Source of the DNA: Mytilus trossulus
Lineage: Eukaryota
DNA: 64,000 nucleotides
Reading direction: 5' to 3'
Assembly: GCF_036588685.1 (NCBI RefSeq)
Contig: NC_086375.1
Span: 16,306,001 to 16,370,000, forward strand
Every line of letters starts with the position of its first letter. Within the stretch, counting starts at the first letter, position 1. Of the stretch, positions 890 through 56,261 are shown in pieces. The notes below the pieces were generated by a model that worked only from the letters and a program-made list of their open reading frames with translations, searched no databases and had not been told where the DNA came from. The position numbers and the translations under genes are program-made.

Positions 890-1998
890 CTGTCTCATTA
901 ATAAAACAAGATGTAGATTGACTTTTGTTTACCGTACTATCTTCTTTTTGTCTTATATCTCAAATCTTTAATACAAAGAAACGGAAAACTCAAATCCAAT
1001 ATGAAAAAACTATTTGCCATTTTCTAATTTAAAGTTATAGTGGGCGATTACAAACGAAGTCAAATTCGATGATTTCGGCAATGGCTTCAATGATGTTTTC
1101 GTGTTTTAGGCTGAAGAAAGCTTCAAACTCAGTAGAGTATTTTGAGGACTTTCTTTATTGCAACTTTATCAAAAATCATATGATAGAGGCAGAGAAAACT
1201 TCTTCAGTATGAGCTTCAGCTTTCGATTATTTCGGCAATGGCTTCGATGATGTTTTCGTATTTGATTCTGAGGGAAGCTTCAAAATCAGTAGAGTTTTTT
1301 TAAGACTTTATTGCAACTTTATCGAAAATCATTCGATAGAGGCAGAGAAAACTTCTTCAGTAAGAGATTCAAAATTTGAGAGTCCACTGTTAACCTTAAT
1401 TTAAAACTGGCGTGGATGTTTTGTGATAAAGATACCAAATAGTCAAATGCAAGCTTTATATAGTAAATCGGCCGATATGGCCTCTTCCATGTCTTGATGT
1501 TCAAGGGGAGACAAGTCTTAATAAATAATTCATAAAACATTTTCATTAATGGTACATACTCTTGCAAACGGTAAACATGTCTAAGGCATTTATCAATTTT
1601 TCCATTGCCTTTGCCAGCGATGTTAACCGTTACCGTTACCGTAAACATTCCATAAAAGGTTTACAGTAGCTCAACAAGTATGATGTATACTATGCAGTTT
1701 ACCGTTTCTTCTTATGCAAAGTTTACAACAACTTACACGATTTTAAATCACTGTCTGAATGTCCAACGGGATATTTGCTTCCAATTTATTTAAAGAGTTT
1801 CGGATAAGAAAGGAATTCAACAGACTGAGACAAAAAAAAACTGTATGCTGATATGGCAAACTGGAGTATAACAATAAAGGACGTTGTCAGGCCTACGTTC
1901 TTCAAGCGCAAACCAGTCCAAATAAAGGACGTTTTTTAACAGAGGATTCAAGCATAGAGGAGATGAGAGACTTAAACGTTTCGATTGTGTTTTCTTGG
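890..1998 (-). pseudogene. Diverged, rearranged relic(s) of the kinase repeat unit
   Basis: Fragments match the spacer (890-1000), the catalytic-loop region (1020-1050), the N-lobe twice (~1068-1230 and ~1230-1365), the TATA/upstream region (~1375-1870), the spacer again (1880-1920) and the C-terminus (~1935-1997), all with many substitutions and indels. Confidence 0.85.
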
Positions 1999-3053: not shown

Positions 3054-3791
3054 TTAAAACTGGCTCAAGGCAAGACGGACTGAGGTTGCATTAGCGCGTT
3101 TTTCAACAGAGGGTTCAAGCATAGAGGAGATGAGAGACTTTAACGTTTCGTTAGTGTTTTCTGGGAAAGAGAGGGTGTTGGAGATTTGAGATTGGACCAT
3201 AGAGGTAGCGTCACTATCGGAGAATGGGAAAGCTCCGAAGAGCATGACGTAGAGCATAACTCCCATACTCCACATATCGGCTTTCATGGCGTTGTGTTCC
3301 ATTCCCATAATAACTTCTGGGGCAGCGTATGGGAGGGTTCCACAAAATTCTTCAGATTCGGCAACAATATCGGACGACTTGGCAAATCCAAAGTCGGCCA
3401 ATTTGACACAACCATTAGACAACAAGACGTTTTCTAATTTAATGTCATTGTGGGCGATTCCAATTGAGTGGCAGTATTCGATTGCTTTGACAACCTGAGA
3501 GAAGAGAGAGAGGGTGGCTTCAACGGACATGAGACCGTTTTTCATTATGTATTCAAAGACATCTCCGAATTCAGCGAATTCCATCAAAACGAAGGCAAAT
3601 TCTTCGGCTTCGATGATTTCAATGGCTTCGACGATGTTTTCGTGTTTGAGGCTGAGAAAAGCTTCAAACTCAGTTGAGGTTTTGATGACTTTCTTTATTG
3701 CAACTTAACCGAATATTTCGCTAGAGGCAGAGAAAACTTCTTCAGTAAGAGCTACAACATTTGAGAGTCCACTGTTCATTAAAAATTCCAT
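3054..3791 (-). pseudogene. TSSK-like kinase copy 1, nonsense mutation K67*
   Basis: A single substitution at 3707 creates TAA (3705-3707) just before VAIK. The rest of the coding sequence matches the other copies. Confidence 0.85.
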
Positions 3792-4023
3792 TTTAAACTG
3801 GCGTGGATGTGATGTGATAAAAATACCAAATAGTGAAATGCAAGCCTTATATAGTAAATCGCCCGATATGGCCTCTTCCATGTCTTGATGTTCAAGGGGA
3901 GACAAGTCTAAATAAATGCTTCCTTACATGATAAAATAGTACATTTTTGGAAATAGCTCCCCTTTTCATTAATGGTACCTACTCTTGCAAACGGTTAACA
4001 TTTCTAAGGCATTTTTCTTATAT

Positions 4024-4866: not shown

Positions 4867-4943
4867 AACAACAGCTCAGACAAAAAAAAAGGCATCCTTG
4901 AAATCACAACATATTGTGATTTCAAGGATGCTTAATTATGTGT

Positions 4944-5681
4944 TTAAAACTGGCTCAAGGCAAGACGGACTGAGGTTGCATTAGCGCGTTTTTCAACAGA
5001 GGGTTCAAGCATAGAGGAGATGAGAGACTTTAACGTTTCGTTAGTGTTTTCTGGGAAAGAGAGGGTGTTGGAGATTTGAGATTGGACCATAGAGGTAGCG
5101 TCACTATCGGAGAATGGGAAAGCTCCGAAGAGCATGACGTAGAGCATAACTCCCATACTCCACATATCGGCTTTCATGGCGTTGTGTTCCATTCCCATAA
5201 TAACTTCTGGGGCAGCGTATGGGAGGGTTCCACAAAATTCTTCAGATTCGGCAACAATATCGGACGACTTGGCAAATCCAAAGTCGGCCAATTTGACACA
5301 ACCATTAGACAACAAGACGTTTTCTAATTTAATGTCATTGTGGGCGATTCCAATTGAGTGGCAGTATTCGATTGCTTTGACAACCTGAGAGAAGAGAGAG
5401 AGGGTGGCTTCAACGGACATGAGACCGTTTTTCATTATGTATTCAAAGACATCTCCGAATTCAGCGAATTCCATCAAAACGAAGGCAAATTCTTCGGCTT
5501 CGATGATTTCAATGGCTTCGACGATGTTTTCGTGTTTGAGGCTGAGAAAAGCTTCAAACTCAGTTGAGGTTTTGATGACTTTCTTTATTGCAACTTTACC
5601 GAATATTTCGCTAGAGGCAGAGAAAACTTCTTCAGTAAGAGCTACAACATTTGAGAGTCCACTGTTCATTAAAAATTCCAT
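4944..5681 (-). CDS. Intronless CAMK-group (TSSK-like) Ser/Thr protein kinase, copy 2, 245 aa
   Basis: Motifs VAIK, LKHENIV, MEFAEFGD, HNDIKLEN, DFG, FCGTLPYAAPE, DMWSMGV and subdomain XI Arg. The start is placed at TTTAAAATG (M39) downstream of the TATA box; the open frame extends upstream to ATG 5771 and TTG 5795. Confidence 0.9.
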   Translation of the reverse strand: MEFLMNSGLSNVVALTEEVFSASSEIFGKVAIKKVIKTSTEFEAFLSLKHENIVEAIEIIEAEEFAFVLMEFAEFGDVFEYIMKNGLMSVEATLSLFSQVVKAIEYCHSIGIAHNDIKLENVLLSNGCVKLADFGFAKSSDIVAESEEFCGTLPYAAPEVIMGMEHNAMKADMWSMGVMLYVMLFGAFPFSDSDATSMVQSQISNTLSFPENTNETLKSLISSMLEPSVEKRANATSVRLALSQF

Positions 5682-5735
5682 TTTAAACTGGCGTGGATGT
5701 GATGTGATAAAGATACCAAATAGTGAAATGCAAGC

Positions 5736-5743
5736 CTTATATA
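5736..5743 (-). promoter_or_regulatory. TATA box of the kinase gene (representative; present in copies 1-29)
   Basis: TATATAAG on the minus strand, 62 nt upstream of the M39 ATG. It is retained as TATATAAA in the diverged relic (~1454-1462). Confidence 0.65.
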
Positions 5744-6835
5744 GTAAATCGCCCGATATGGCCTCTTCCATGTCTTGATGTTCAAGGGGAGACAAGTCTA
5801 AATAAATGCTTCCTTACATGATAAAATAGTACATTTTTGGAAATAGCTCCCCTTTTCATTAATGGTACCTACTCTTGCAAACGGTTAACATTTCTAAGGC
5901 ATTTTTCTTATATGTTTACCGTTGCCATAAACTTTTCCATAGCTTGTGACTGCGATGTTTACCGTAACCATACAAATTCTATTAAAGGTTTACCGTAGCT
6001 CAACTAGTATAAGTATACTCTGCAGTTTACCGTTTCTTCGCACGCTGAAGGTTTACCACAACAAACAACGATATTAAATCACTGTCTGAATGTTCAAGGG
6101 GATATTTGCTTCCAATTTATTCAATGAGTTTCGGATTAGAAATGAATTCCACAGAAGACAAAAAAAAAAAACTGTATGCTGATACGGTAAACTGGACTAT
6201 AAAGTATAATACTGGGTCCTTTTATTTTGGTATTGCATCTTTCTTTACCGTACCCTCATACAATTAGTTTACCTAGAAATGTCTTTGCTCTGAGCAGATA
6301 ATATCAGCAACGTCATAGTGTTTGAGGAGAAGTTATCAGCGACCGTCACAAGACGTTGTCAGGCCTACGTTTGTCAAGCGCAAACCAGTTCAAAAGAGGG
6401 GGCGAATAGTGAAAGAACGAATACGAGAGTATAGGTGTTCAGCCGCTCGACGCAAGGTGAAGCTCTCTGGCTCGCGGCTGATATGTTTCCGATATCAATA
6501 GACAGAAACTCTGAAATCATTACCTATCAATATCCTTATCTTGTTTCTCAAACATTTAATACAAAGAAACGGGAAACTGAAATGTTAAAGGATTGTTTGG
6601 TGATACGGTAAACTAGACTAAAAATAGTATTAATCACTTAGCAGTGTCTCATTGATAAAACAAGAGGTATAAGACGTGCCAATCCTTAAAGGAATGTAGA
6701 CCAAACGTTAACATGTGTTTACCGTAACCGCATATCGTATTTGATCACGGTTTACCGTAACAACAGCTCAGACAAAAAAAAAGGCATCCTTGAAATAACA
6801 ACATATTGTGATTTCAAGGATGCTTAATTATGTGT

Positions 6836-8704: not shown

Positions 8705-9430
8705 TTAAAACTGGCTCAAGGCAAGACGGACTGAGGTTGCATTAGCGCGTTTTTCAACAGAGGGTTCAAGCATAGAGGAGATGAGAGACTTTAACGTTTC
8801 GTTAGTGTTTTCTGGGAAAGAGAGGGTGTTGGAGATTTGAGATTGGACCATAGAGGTAGCGTCACTATCGGAGAATGGGAAAGCTCCGAAGAGCATGACG
8901 TAGAGCATAACTCCCATACTCCACATATCGGCTTTCATGGCGTTGTGTTCCATTCCCATAATAACTTCTGGGGCAGCGTATGGGAGGGTTCCACAAAATT
9001 CTTCAGATTCGGCAACAATATCGGACGACTTGGCAAATCCAAAGTCGGCCAATTTGACACAACCATTAGACAACAAGACGTTTTCTAATTTAATGTCATT
9101 GTGGGCGATTCCAATTGAGTGGCAGTATTCGATTGCTTTGACAACCTGAGAGATGAGAGAGAGGGTGGCTTCAACGGACATGAGACCGTTTTTCATTATG
9201 TATTCAAAGACATCTCCGAATTCAGCGAATTCCATCAAAACGAAGGCAAATTCTTCGGCTTCGATGATTTCAATGGCTTCGACGATGTTTTCGTGTTTGA
9301 GGCTGAGAAAAGCTTCAAACTCAGTTGAGGTTTTGATGACTTTCTTTATTGCAACTTTACCGAATATTTCGCTAGAGGCAGAGAAAACTTCTTCAGTAAG
9401 AGCTACAACATTTGAGAGTCCACTGTTCAT
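8705..9430 (-). CDS. TSSK-like kinase copy 4 (M39 ATG>ATA, F135I)
   Basis: Intact frame. The presumed start is mutated, so the next ATG (M43) is used for the coordinates. Confidence 0.8.
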   Translation of the reverse strand: MNSGLSNVVALTEEVFSASSEIFGKVAIKKVIKTSTEFEAFLSLKHENIVEAIEIIEAEEFAFVLMEFAEFGDVFEYIMKNGLMSVEATLSLISQVVKAIEYCHSIGIAHNDIKLENVLLSNGCVKLADFGFAKSSDIVAESEEFCGTLPYAAPEVIMGMEHNAMKADMWSMGVMLYVMLFGAFPFSDSDATSMVQSQISNTLSFPENTNETLKSLISSMLEPSVEKRANATSVRLALSQF

Positions 9431-10578
9431 TAAAAATTCTATTTTAAACTGGCGTGGATGTGATGTGATAAAGATACCAAATAATGAAATGCAAGCCTTA
9501 TATAGTAAATCGCCCGATATGGCCTCTTCCATGTCTTGATGTTCAAGGGGAGACAAGTCTAAATAAATGCTTCCTTACATGATAAAATAGTACATTTTTG
9601 GAAATAGCTCCCCTTTTCATTAATGGTACCTACTCTTGCAAACGGTTAACATTTCTAAGGCATTTTTCTTATATGTTTACCGTTGCCATAAACTTTTCCA
9701 TAGCTTGTGACTGCGATGTTTACCGTAACCATACAAATTCTATTAAAGGTTTACCGTAGCTCAACTAGTATAAGTATACTCTGCAGTTTACCGTTTCTTC
9801 GCACGCTGAAGGTTTACCACAACAAACAACGATATTAAATCACTGTCTGAATGTTCAAGGGGATATTTGCTTCCAATTTATTCAATGAGTTTCGGATTAG
9901 AAATGAATTCCACAGAAGACAAAAAAAAACTGTATGCTGATACGGTAAACTGGACTATAAAGTATAATACTGGGTCCTTTTATTTTGGTATTGCATCTTT
10001 CTTTACCGTACCCTCATACAATTAGTTTACCTAGAAATGTCTTTGCTCTGAGCAGATAATATCAGCAACGTCATAGTGTTTGAGGAGAAGTTATCAGCGA
10101 CCGTCACAAGACGTTGTCAGGCCTACGTTTGTCAAGCGCAAACCAGTTCAAAAGAGGGGGCGAATAGTGAAAGAACGAATACGAGAGTATAGGTGTTCAG
10201 CCGCTCGACGCAAGGTGAAGCTCTCTGGCTCGCGGCTGATATGTTTCCGATATCAATAGACAGAAACTCTGAAATCATTACCTATCAATATCCTTATCTT
10301 GTTTCTCAAACATTTAATACAAAGAAACGGGAAACTGAAATGTTAAAGGATTGTTTGGTGATACGGTAAACTAGACTAAAAATAGTATTAATCACTTAGC
10401 AGTGTCTCATTGATAAAACAAGAGGTATAAGATGTGCCAATCCTTAAAGGAATGTAGACCAAACGTTAACATGTGTTTACCGTAACCGCATATCGTATTT
10501 GATCACGGTTTACCGTAACAACAGCTCAGACAAAAAAAAAGGCATCCTTGAAATCACAACATATTCTTAATTATGTGT

Positions 10579-21902: not shown

Positions 21903-22628
21903 TTAAAACTGGCTCAAGGCAAGACGGACTGAGGTTGCATTAGCGCGTTTTTCAACAGAGGGTTCAAGCATAGAGGAGATGAGAGACTTTAACGTTTCGT
22001 TAGTGTTTTCTGGGAAAGAGAGGGTGTTGGAGATTTGAGATTGGACCATAGAGGTAGCGTCACTATCGGAGAATGGGAAAGCTCCGAAGAGCATGACGTA
22101 GAGCATAACTCCCATACTCCACATATCGGCTTTCATGGCGTTGTGTTCCATTCCCATAATAACTTCTGGGGCAGCGTATGGGAGGGTTCCACAAAATTCT
22201 TCAGATTCGGCAACAATATCGGACGACTTGGCAAATCCAAAGTCGGCCAATTTGACACAACCATTAGACAACAAGACGTTTTCTAATTTAATGTCATTGT
22301 GGGCGATTCCAATTGAGTGGCAGTATTCGATTGCTTTGACAACCTGAGAGATGAGAGAGAGGGTGGCTTCAACGGACATGAGACCGTTTTTCATTATGTA
22401 TTCAAAGACATCTCCGAATTCAGCGAATTCCATCAAAACGAAGGCAAATTCTTCGGCTTCGATGATTTCAATGGCTTCGACGATGTTTTCGTGTTTGAGG
22501 CTGAGAAAAGCTTCAAACTCAGTTGAGGTTTTGATGACTTTCTTTATTGCAACTTTACCGAATATTTCGCTAGAGGCAGAGAAAACTTCTTCAGTAAGAG
22601 CTACAACATTTGAGAGTCCACTGTTCAT
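21903..22628 (-). CDS. TSSK-like kinase copy 11 (M39 ATG>ATA, F135I; same as copy 4)
   Basis: Intact frame; the next ATG (M43) is used for the coordinates. Confidence 0.8.
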   Translation of the reverse strand: MNSGLSNVVALTEEVFSASSEIFGKVAIKKVIKTSTEFEAFLSLKHENIVEAIEIIEAEEFAFVLMEFAEFGDVFEYIMKNGLMSVEATLSLISQVVKAIEYCHSIGIAHNDIKLENVLLSNGCVKLADFGFAKSSDIVAESEEFCGTLPYAAPEVIMGMEHNAMKADMWSMGVMLYVMLFGAFPFSDSDATSMVQSQISNTLSFPENTNETLKSLISSMLEPSVEKRANATSVRLALSQF

Positions 22629-23776
22629 TAAAAATTCTATTTTAAACTGGCGTGGATGTGATGTGATAAAGATACCAAATAATGAAATGCAAGCCTTATA
22701 TAGTAAATCGCCCGATATGGCCTCTTCCATGTCTTGATGTTCAAGGGGAGACAAGTCTAAATAAATGCTTCCTTACATGATAAAATAGTACATTTTTGGA
22801 AATAGCTCCCCTTTTCATTAATGGTACCTACTCTTGCAAACGGTTAACATTTCTAAGGCATTTTTCTTATATGTTTACCGTTGCCATAAACTTTTCCATA
22901 GCTTGTGACTGCGATGTTTACCGTAACCATACAAATTCTATTAAAGGTTTACCGTAGCTCAACTAGTATAAGTATACTCTGCAGTTTACCGTTTCTTCGC
23001 ACGCTGAAGGTTTACCACAACAAACAACGATATTAAATCACTGTCTGAATGTTCAAGGGGATATTTGCTTCCAATTTATTCAATGAGTTTCGGATTAGAA
23101 ATGAATTCCACAGAAGACAAAAAAAAACTGTATGCTGATACGGTAAACTGGACTATAAAGTATAATACTGGGTCCTTTTATTTTGGTATTGCATCTTTCT
23201 TTACCGTACCCTCATACAATTAGTTTACCTAGAAATGTCTTTGCTCTGAGCAGATAATATCAGCAACGTCATAGTGTTTGAGGAGAAGTTATCAGCGACC
23301 GTCACAAGACGTTGTCAGGCCTACGTTTGTCAAGCGCAAACCAGTTCAAAAGAGGGGGCGAATAGTGAAAGAACGAATACGAGAGTATAGGTGTTCAGCC
23401 GCTCGACGCAAGGTGAAGCTCTCTGGCTCGCGGCTGATATGTTTCCGATATCAATAGACAGAAACTCTGAAATCATTACCTATCAATATCCTTATCTTGT
23501 TTCTCAAACATTTAATACAAAGAAACGGGAAACTGAAATGTTAAAGGATTGTTTGGTGATACGGTAAACTAGACTAAAAATAGTATTAATCACTTAGCAG
23601 TGTCTCATTGATAAAACAAGAGGTATAAGATGTGCCAATCCTTAAAGGAATGTAGACCAAACGTTAACATGTGTTTACCGTAACCGCATATCGTATTTGA
23701 TCACGGTTTACCGTAACAACAGCTCAGACAAAAAAAAAGGCATCCTTGAAATCACAACATATTCTTAATTATGTGT

Positions 23777-40793: not shown

Positions 40794-41513
40794 TTAAAAC
40801 TGGCTCAAGGCAAGACGGACTGAGCTTGCATTAGCGCGTTTTTCAACAGAGGGTTCAAGCATAGAGGAGATGAGAGACTTTAACGTTTCGTTAGTGTTTT
40901 CTGGGAAAGAGAGGGTGTTGGAGATTTGAGATTGGACCATAGAGGTAGCGTCACTATCGGAGAATGGGAAAGCTCCGAAGAGCATGACGTAGAGCATAAC
41001 TCCCATACTCCACATATCGGCTTTCATGGCGTTGTGTTCCATTCCCATAATAACTTCTGGGGCAGCGTATGGGAGGGTTCCACAAAATTCTTCAGATTCG
41101 GCAACAATATCGGACGACTTGGCAAATCCAAAGTCGGCCAATTTGACACAACCATTAGACAACAAGACGTTTTCTAATTTAATGTCATTGTGGGCGATTC
41201 CAATTGAGTGGCAGTATTCGATTGCTTTGACAACCTGAGAGAAGAGAGAGAGGGTGGCTTCAACGGACATGAGACCGTTTTTCATTATGTATTCAAAGAC
41301 ATCTCCGAATTCAGCGAATTCCATCAAAACGAAGGCAAATTCTTCGGCTTCGATGATTTCAATGGCTTCGACGATGTTTTCGTGTTTGAGGCTGAGAAAA
41401 GCTTCAAACTCAGTTGAGGTTTTGATGACTTTCTTTATTTCGCTAGAGGCAGAGAAAACTTCTTCAGTAAGAGCTACAACATTTGAGAGTCCACTGTTCA
41501 TTAAAAATTCCAT
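40794..41513 (-). CDS. TSSK-like kinase copy 21 with in-frame 6-aa deletion (FGKVAI); probably inactive
   Basis: 18-bp deletion at ~41436-41439 between TATT direct repeats; the protein reads SSEIKKV. Confidence 0.75.
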   Translation of the reverse strand: MEFLMNSGLSNVVALTEEVFSASSEIKKVIKTSTEFEAFLSLKHENIVEAIEIIEAEEFAFVLMEFAEFGDVFEYIMKNGLMSVEATLSLFSQVVKAIEYCHSIGIAHNDIKLENVLLSNGCVKLADFGFAKSSDIVAESEEFCGTLPYAAPEVIMGMEHNAMKADMWSMGVMLYVMLFGAFPFSDSDATSMVQSQISNTLSFPENTNETLKSLISSMLEPSVEKRANASSVRLALSQF

Positions 41514-55605: not shown

Positions 55606-56261
55606 GGGTGCTATAAACAGTTTCGTACTAAAAACTAGGGGTATTTCCCCAGTGAGATTTACATACTGATGGAATTCCCTGCTATTTATATACCACTAAA
55701 TGAAAAAGTTGATTGTTTTTTATGTTCAATGTGAAAAACATATATTGAAGTTCAATTAAAATGCCACTTTTGTCAAGATTTAAAAAAAAAAAAATGTTTT
55801 TGTGACTTCCTACTATATGGGAGGCAACTCCATAAACAGCTGATTTTCACCTGTTGCAAAAAGCACTTTGATTTGTCAGGTAAGATAGCTCCTTTCGGAG
55901 CAGGCGAACGTAGGCTGAAACTACATTTTCTTAAATCAGCCGGACAAGCTCTTCGAAATGCATATTATAAGAAATCTCAAATATATGCACAGGTTACTGA
56001 TCCATGTGTCCAAAGGTGGTCTGTTTTTAAGGTTTTTTAGGGGGAAAATGCCTAATTTCCAGCTGATAACTTGTACCAATTTGCATGTTTAAACAAGAGA
56101 TGTTGGATTTTTTTTTATTTATTCAGACAGTTCATAGAATTATCTTTCCATTGATGTATAGATATCTATATAACTATGAATATCTGACTTCTGCATGATG
56201 GGTCCACTATTACATGCCCTGTTACAGAATGACGTCGCGTAAAAAACTGTTGATTGCACCC
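55606..56261. mobile_element. Non-autonomous DNA transposon (PIF/Harbinger, Tourist-like MITE), 656 bp
   Basis: TIRs GGGTGCTATAAACAGTTT and AAACTGTTGATTGCACCC (16/18 match). TTA target duplication at 55603-55605 and 56262-56264. The other units show the empty site CATTTAATAC, and this unit is longer by 659 bp. Confidence 0.9.

Follow-up and report, generated by a model that had tools for sequence, protein, structure and literature searches.

Kinases of the AMPK/TSSK branch are the textbook case of control by T-loop phosphorylation, and the locus described here raises the question of whether a member of this branch can shed that control and still be a kinase. The locus lies in a stretch of 64,000 nucleotides from chromosome 3 of Mytilus trossulus (NC_086375.1, positions 16,306,001 to 16,370,000), herein termed the window, which harbors about 30 head-to-tail cassettes of a TSSK-type mini-kinase gene. 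An earlier note on one of these copies had interpreted its product as a non-RD kinase with a built-in phosphomimetic activation loop, whose activity would be independent of an upstream kinase and whose output would be set by expression and gene dosage. The present analysis suggests that the gene encodes a kinase-domain-only derivative of the TSSK/AMPK-related (CAMK-group) kinases that would be catalytically competent without T-loop Thr phosphorylation, a reading which we consider on balance probable.

The copy under study is carried by an uninterrupted open reading frame (ORF), which was recovered as a full-length match in the genome search and contains no domain besides the kinase (Table 1). 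The residue numbers E186, N153 and S184 given in the earlier note had been counted from a TTG at 5795, which extends the ORF to 283 aa. The TATA box is located inside this extension, and the extension is closed by a stop in the related array on chromosome 1; the product is therefore a protein of 245 aa rather than 283 aa, and the correct numbers are E148, N115 and S146.

Table 1. Positions of the mini-kinase gene, its functional residues and flanking elements, and the surrounding array in the window.
Feature	Position	Strand	Basis
Intronless mini-TSSK coding sequence, 245 aa, copy under study (ATG at 5681, TAA at 4944-4946)	4944-5681	(-)	ORF, Pfam, AlphaFold2 (AF2), Foldseek
TATA box TATATAAG, 55-62 nt upstream of the ATG	5736-5743	(-)	Conserved in the unit alignment of chromosomes 3, 4 and 1
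Four ACGGTAAAC motifs on the sense strand, clustered ~230-350 nt ahead of the ATG	5914-6033	(-)	Motif count, inter-array conservation
Perfect 18-bp hairpin (4892-4931) with U9 (4882-4890)	4882-4931	(-)	Folding, inter-array alignment
TEEVFSA, T16-A22, in place of the glycine-rich loop GxGxxG	5616-5636	(-)	MAFFT
β3 Lys K33 (5583-5585) and αC Glu E41 (5559-5561)	5559-5585	(-)	Both invariant
Catalytic loop HNDIKLEN, H114-N121	5319-5342	(-)	Sequence, MARK4 and TSSK alignments
Codon of N115 (AAT)	5337-5339	(-)	Hand-checked
Activation segment, DFG to APE, D133-E159	5205-5285	(-)	Aligned to MARK4 KLDTFCGS and TSSK S-x-T-[FY]-CGS
Codon of K138 (of DFGFAK)	5268-5270	(-)	
Codon of S146	5244-5246	(-)	Hand-checked
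Codon of E148 (GAA)	5238-5240	(-)	Hand-checked
Codon of residue 150, Cys at T-loop+2 (EFCG)	5232-5234	(-)	
Tandem array of the kinase cassette, edges approximate	2000-58950	(-)	ORF list, whole-genome protein search, unit spacings
Defective array copies	8705-9556, 21903-22754, 40794-41513, 3054-3905		
Degenerate kinase-ORF fragments	1053-1514		
656-bp insertion in one array spacer	55606-56261		

Upstream of the gene, the motif ACGGTAAAC (reverse complement GTTTACCGT) attracts attention by its frequency, with 238 exact matches in the window against 0.42 expected and eight per unit between 2000 and 58950. These motifs, which include what we take to be a forkhead-like GTAAAC core, form conserved islands between arrays whose surrounding spacers have diverged beyond alignment, so that the cluster likely consists of putative transcription-factor sites. 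On the other side of the gene, a hairpin with a 4-nt loop follows every copy, beginning 12 nt past the stop (ΔG -32.3 kcal/mol, z = -6.4), and its stem is retained in the chromosome-1 array despite an 18-nt insert in the loop. A search of Rfam with this hairpin returned no family above threshold, the generic hairpin matches being sub-threshold. In the unit alignment of the three arrays, conservation is most apparent in the TATA box, the ACGGTAAAC cluster, the coding sequence and the hairpin with its U9 tract, and the middle of the spacer is unalignable.

The cassette unit measures about 1.89 kb, with spacings of 1869-1892 bp, and the array was defined from the ORF list together with a genome-wide protein search; Tandem Repeats Finder detected no array in the window, where its longest period was 500 against the 1.89-kb unit. 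The 30-fold amplification put forward earlier is right as a count of copies, which number about 30, but only 27 of these are full-length coding sequences (two of the 27 with ATG changed to ATA), and the rest are defective or partial, comprising one copy with a deletion of six amino acids, a second with a premature TAA and a third that is partial. Among the defective copies located in Table 1, two carry the ATG>ATA change (and F97I), one has lost FGKVAI in frame (239 aa) and one has the premature TAA. Twelve coding variants were counted across the 27 copies, 11 of them nonsynonymous and one synonymous; none falls on the catalytic loop, E148, S146 or any other of the family-conserved sites described below, and these young variants look neutral.

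In the 1.3-Gb genome, mini-kinase arrays are present on three chromosomes, with about 50 copies altogether. The sister array on chromosome 4 (C4, 20.12-20.15 Mb) contains ~10 copies in a unit of 1.88 kb at 96% amino-acid identity, while that on chromosome 1 (C1, 26.00-26.03 Mb) contains ~16 copies in a unit of 1.71 kb at 90% identity. Outside the 5' edge of the homogeneous window array, stop-ridden and degenerate fragments of the kinase ORF with 67-76% identity are found, which are decayed edge copies that escaped homogenisation. One unit spacing is enlarged to 2549 bp because of the 656-bp insertion. The insertion belongs to a dispersed repeat, of which other chromosomes carry many copies at 99-100% identity (726 candidates on a first look), and it also occurs in a tandem array of 1424-bp period at C10, 51.60-51.65 Mb. 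Its features suggest a non-autonomous mobile element, or a satellite, of young age.

As to the switch itself, the segment from H114 to E159 of the 245-aa ORF (HNDIKLENVLLSNGCVKLADFGFAKSSDIVAESEEFCGTLPYAAPE) reads HNDIKLEN followed further on by DFGFAKSSDIVAESEEFCGTLPYAAPE. The catalytic loop with Asn in place of the HRD Arg, as first proposed, was confirmed by translation of the ORF and by alignment with MARK4 and TSSKs. When solved MARK4 chains were searched with phmmer, the T-loop Thr (KLDTFCGS) came to stand opposite E148 and the HRD Arg opposite N115. Alignment with the TSSKs of insects and ticks (S-x-T-[FY]-CGS and HRDLKCEN; MAFFT alignment A1) and with two canonical TSSK paralogues in the same genome gave an identical pairing. 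These alignments also bear out the Glu that had been assigned to the position of the regulatory Thr before FCG, which is invariant in 33 family sequences and is embedded in an acidic E-S-[D/E]-E run with E145, D/E147 and E148 as its acidic residues.

The other residues invariant in the 33 sequences are K33, E41, H114, D116, K118, N121, DFG, APE (A157-P-E), S146 and T152, the last of which stands after CG, whereas E145 and K138 are each retained in 32. A Ser equivalent to S146 is present in at least 90% of the A1 sequences, outgroups included. The β3 Lys, the catalytic Asp and the DFG Asp, on whose loss the classical definition of a pseudokinase is based, are thus all retained without exception. 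Position 115 behaves differently, being occupied by Cys in 17 of the 33 sequences, Asn in 10, Ser in five and Gly in one, and it is never basic. The mini-kinase is accordingly a non-RD kinase with no Arg before the catalytic Asp, whether through N115 in the window copy or through C, N, S or G across the family. Asn as the replacement, as described in the earlier note, holds for the window copy but not for the family; since position 115 varies, the Arg has simply been lost, and Asn is incidental.

In most non-Mytilus family members, the former RD position 115 is taken by Cys (HCD) together with a conserved Cys at residue 150, and Mytilus has Asn115. A redox or disulfide pair formed by Cys115 and Cys150 and adjoining the active site is possible in these non-Mytilus members.

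Beyond the Arg and the Thr, a third change appears from the alignments to co-occur with these two, which had not been weighed before, namely the loss of the glycine-rich loop. Pfam Pkinase (PF00069) is matched at 175 bits, where the cut-off is 31.7 (E = 2.6e-51), over profile positions 43-257 only. In the MAFFT alignment, LTEEVFSA occupies the columns of the outgroup sequence LGEGSFGK, the second Gly being replaced by Glu or Asp in the family, and the loop pattern G.G.[FYW][GAS].V is matched by no family member and by most full-length outgroups. The TEEVFSA segment is conserved within the family, the Phe at the loop tip included. Moreover, K33 and E41 are separated by 8 residues, compared with about 11 residues more in the outgroup TSSKs of alignment A1; the β2-β3 hairpin is shortened, and helix αC has lost its N-terminal half.

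The AF2 model, for which a 70-sequence alignment served as input, displays a confident kinase fold with a mean pLDDT of 88.8 and a pTM of 0.86; its weaker parts are residues 1-30 (pLDDT 50-65) and the activation-loop block 141-150 (pLDDT 77), and αC comprises residues 40-47 only, about half of the normal length. Foldseek returned SIK3, AMPK and MARK as the best matches of this model, while among solved structures the best sequence match was MARK4 (E = 2.2e-38), followed by MARK1-3 and then by MELK, SIK3, AMPK and TSSK6. With the Gly loop lost, αC shortened and the first 30 residues poorly modelled, ATP binding may be weak or absent in the mini-kinase, which makes activity itself less certain.

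These features require the notion of a built-in phosphomimetic to be revised. The usual counterpart of a phosphomimetic is the basic RD pocket. A Glu indeed occupies the phospho-site, but the RD Arg is gone, half of αC is deleted and K138 is the only partner left, with which E148 would at most make a putative contact. Because both the RD Arg and the N-terminal part of αC are gone, it is more accurate to speak of a switch deleted than of a phosphomimetic built in. The proposed independence from an upstream kinase is retained in a weaker form. The T-loop Thr is indeed lost, but the step is smaller than had been supposed, as TSSK activity requires T-loop Thr phosphorylation that is mostly autophosphorylation (PMC7401350, PMC10799855), and TSSK1/2/6 autophosphorylate their own T-loop Thr without any need of a second kinase (PMC7401350). 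Since canonical TSSKs thus activate themselves, the step dispensed with is autophosphorylation, not a requirement for another kinase acting upstream.

The best named matches to the mini-kinase belong to M. trossulus, M. edulis, M. galloprovincialis and M. coruscus. A word-index search recovered Mytilus proteins and at least 14 relatives of 242-267 aa at 69-81% identity, after which a gap extends down to 47% or less. An exhaustive search of 1.84 billion cluster representatives yielded one representative at 50% identity for the whole family, with the other top single-domain matches at 47% or below, and the best named matches outside the family were insect, tick and mussel TSSKs at 31-38% identity. 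One cluster of relatives has three members on a single 17-kb contig, and no single-copy family member was found for comparison among the retrieved relatives.

In the motif table, which was based on 300 retrieved proteins, every family member (~50 sequences) combines H-[C/N/S/G]-D and E-FCG with the absence of GxGxxG. The ~100 scorable outgroup domains all possess HRD and most of them possess Thr and the Gly loop; an acidic T-loop residue was encountered there as R+E twice and as R+D once, in no case in a non-RD domain. The suggestion that both halves of the switch were lost together is thereby upheld, in that the double loss is derived, recurs throughout the clade and is absent from the nearest outgroups, which keep HRD and, with few exceptions, Thr. 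Judged from these sequences, the loss of the HRD Arg, the replacement of Thr by Glu and the loss of the Gly loop are derived and strictly linked.

In the maximum-likelihood tree, the family is placed on one stem of 1.46 substitutions per site with 100/100 support, and it joins a TSSK-containing group at 94/90, within a polytomy and on a very long branch. A group with 42-47% identity (P0024) keeps HRD, Thr and the Gly loop together with the short K-to-E spacing, and its best match in the Mytilus genome is the mini-kinase itself. This group was considered as a sister or intermediate lineage and set aside, its position in the tree being unsupported and subject to a warning of long-branch attraction. 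Within the family, the C1-type copy clusters with a protein of M. edulis and the C3/C4 type with one of M. coruscus, which indicates that the array types predate the speciation of Mytilus. The non-RD/Glu state is common to relatives down to 69% identity and is therefore far older than the present homogenised arrays. The Mytilus copies are already in NCBI under the annotation 'testis-specific serine/threonine-protein kinase 3-like' (TSSK3-like), and the literature on TSSKs in bivalves and Mytilus yielded no description of a non-RD/Glu family without a Gly loop or of its arrays.

Comparison of the arrays by the Nei-Gojobori method gave a dN/dS of 0.14 for chromosome 3 versus 1 and 0.175 for chromosome 4 versus 1, at a dS of ~0.26. 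Values of 0.14-0.18 between arrays imply that the protein is functional, and it is subject to purifying selection. In two RNA libraries, both metatranscriptomes, assembled contigs covered the coding sequence (4929-5739) at a depth of 8-25, compared with 3-4 in the upstream spacer, this signal carrying no strand, transcript-end, tissue or sex information. The contigs extended upstream to 5724-5739, and none was found in the two libraries 3' of 4929, a position inside the hairpin. A 1.75-kb head-to-tail contig from two further runs was rejected as a sign of expression, since it seems to represent a tandem unit in collapsed form, from a related organism and perhaps from DNA. Testis would be the expected tissue of mini-kinase expression; judging by its qPCR primer, the TSTK1 of M. 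edulis testis (PMC3144882) is apparently the canonical paralogue and not the mini-kinase.

Purifying selection together with an intact catalytic core makes a kinase that needs no T-loop Thr phosphorylation the most economical reading. It has to be weighed against a pseudokinase or scaffold, in which ATP binding would be abolished and which would work by partner binding, for instance by titrating the substrates or regulators of canonical TSSKs. In that case, the loss of the Arg and the Glu in the T-loop would mark a kinase no longer needing to be switched. That GxGxxG is lacking throughout the family and the second Gly is replaced by an acidic residue speaks for such a protein, as do the Pfam match that begins only at profile position 43 and the low AF2 confidence of the N-terminal 30 residues, and the very long stem branch would fit a change of function. 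However, invariance down to 69% identity extends to the β3 Lys, the catalytic Asp, the DFG Asp, the αC Glu, K118, N121 and APE, with a dN/dS of ~0.15, and the conservation of TEEVFSA argues for a nucleotide loop that was remodelled rather than decayed, so that we regard a pseudokinase as rather unlikely. An active kinase might alternatively be switched by phosphorylation elsewhere, at S146 or T152, the Glu contributing part of the negative charge. Both residues are invariant in the family, the Ser is shared by the large majority of A1, and the non-RD kinase EFR is activated through phosphorylation of its activation loop (PMC8463890); in view of this precedent and of the invariance of S146 and T152, the non-RD state in itself is no proof of independence from phosphorylation. 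Against this, little is left of the basic pocket that would read a phosphate, the RD Arg being absent and αC cut short; the loop already contains three or four acidic residues, and the conservation of S146 and T152 is explicable structurally. A switch at these residues seems distinctly unlikely to us.

It could also be argued that the window contains no more than amplified sequence without function, either a satellite or an array of retrocopies in decay, in which the motifs are mutational noise. The predominance of nonsynonymous changes among the young variants (11 to 1) and the several defective copies are in keeping with decay, but this account is scarcely credible, as it is contradicted by the between-array dN/dS of 0.14-0.18 and by motifs that are invariant across species and in relatives down to 69% identity. 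Moreover, both array types are nearest to sequences of other Mytilus species, the promoter, the motif cluster and the hairpin are conserved while the other spacer sequence has diverged, and the coding sequence is represented in RNA libraries.

For the preferred reading, a kinase competent without T-loop Thr phosphorylation, the following course may be proposed. On the stem branch, the HRD Arg was lost, leaving C, N, S or G in its place, the T-loop Thr was replaced by the invariant Glu of E-S-[D/E]-E, and the Gly loop was converted to TEEVFSA with shortening of the β2-β3 hairpin and αC. The activation segment would be held in place without a phosphate on the T-loop Thr, the residues of phosphotransfer being all invariant, and the autophosphorylation step of the TSSKs would be permanently dispensed with. 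The non-glycine loop would probably change the way ATP is handled, lowering the affinity, and output would be set mainly by copy number and by transcription from the TATA promoter and the ACGGTAAAC cluster.

The dosage rationale for the amplification, which the earlier note had offered, is purely conjectural. Its fullest version, an always-on germline kinase with a glycine-free ATP site that is tuned by dose, whose ~50 copies on three chromosomes were driven by sperm competition or intragenomic conflict, strikes us as highly doubtful; if true, it would mean that an animal kinase switch was traded for copy-number control. Under this version, a link between the mini-kinase and the Mytilus-specific paternal mitochondrial transmission and sex-ratio biology would be one possibility.

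The clade is a natural case in which the RD Arg, the phospho-Thr and the Gly loop have been shed together while the catalytic residues are kept in ~50 copies. If the protein is active, it would reveal how much of its N-lobe and activation switch a eukaryotic protein kinase can dispense with, and it would provide a compact scaffold of 245 aa for the study of switch-independent activity. If inactive, it would represent a pseudokinase overlooked by residue-based (K/D/D) definitions. The 'TSSK3-like' annotations in Mytilus also hide a distinct amplified family, which may be important in mussel reproduction.

Among known systems, TSSK1-6 and the Drosophila dTSSK (CAMK group, AMPK-related) resemble the mini-kinase in being intronless genes for a kinase domain only, and the signature S-x-[T]-[FY]-CG-[ST]-x-x-Y-A-A-P-E is common to both. 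The canonical TSSKs, including the two paralogues in this genome, have HRD, the T-loop Thr and GxGxxG, whereas the mini-kinase clade lacks all three and is further distinguished by its length of 245 aa and its roughly 50 tandem copies. E148 aligns on the LKB1-site Thr of MARK/AMPK-family kinases, and the MARK1 chain 6c9d_A as deposited reads KLDEFCGS, with the same E-FCG as the mussel protein. In the Thr>Glu constructs of MARK/AMPK, however, the HRD Arg and a full αC are present and the basic pocket is intact, in contrast with the dismantled pocket of the mussel protein. A natural Glu at the activation-loop phospho-site is found in phosphorylase kinase γ (PhKγ), a constitutively competent RD kinase of the CAMK group, in which the RD Arg is retained and pairs with this Glu. 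The mussel kinase shares the Glu with PhKγ but has lost the Arg, and the outgroup domains with R+E and R+D are of the PhKγ type.

Tens of homogenised, near-identical copies of a small germline-type gene at several sites are also characteristic of the ampliconic testis arrays Stellate/Su(Ste) of Drosophila and Slx/Sly of mouse, to which the mussel arrays are similar in these respects; for the sex linkage, antagonistic partner arrays, piRNA targeting and drive of the Stellate/Slx type, the present data contain no evidence. With regard to the catalytic machinery, MLCK, DAPK and titin/twitchin are non-RD kinases within the CAMK group, and the non-RD class is generally not activated via phosphate docking on the RD pocket. 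The mini-kinase agrees with these kinases, as well as with IRAK, Pelle and the plant immune receptor kinases (PMC8463890), in having no Arg before the catalytic Asp. Those families possess normal Gly loops and full N-lobes and are regulated by autoinhibitory tails or partners, whereas the mussel protein has no extra domain and, unlike them, has descended recently from an ancestor of the RD type with a Thr switch. Both the non-RD kinases and naturally occurring acidic residues that stand in for the activation-loop phosphate have long been known, and the combination found in the mussel is a variant of these themes.
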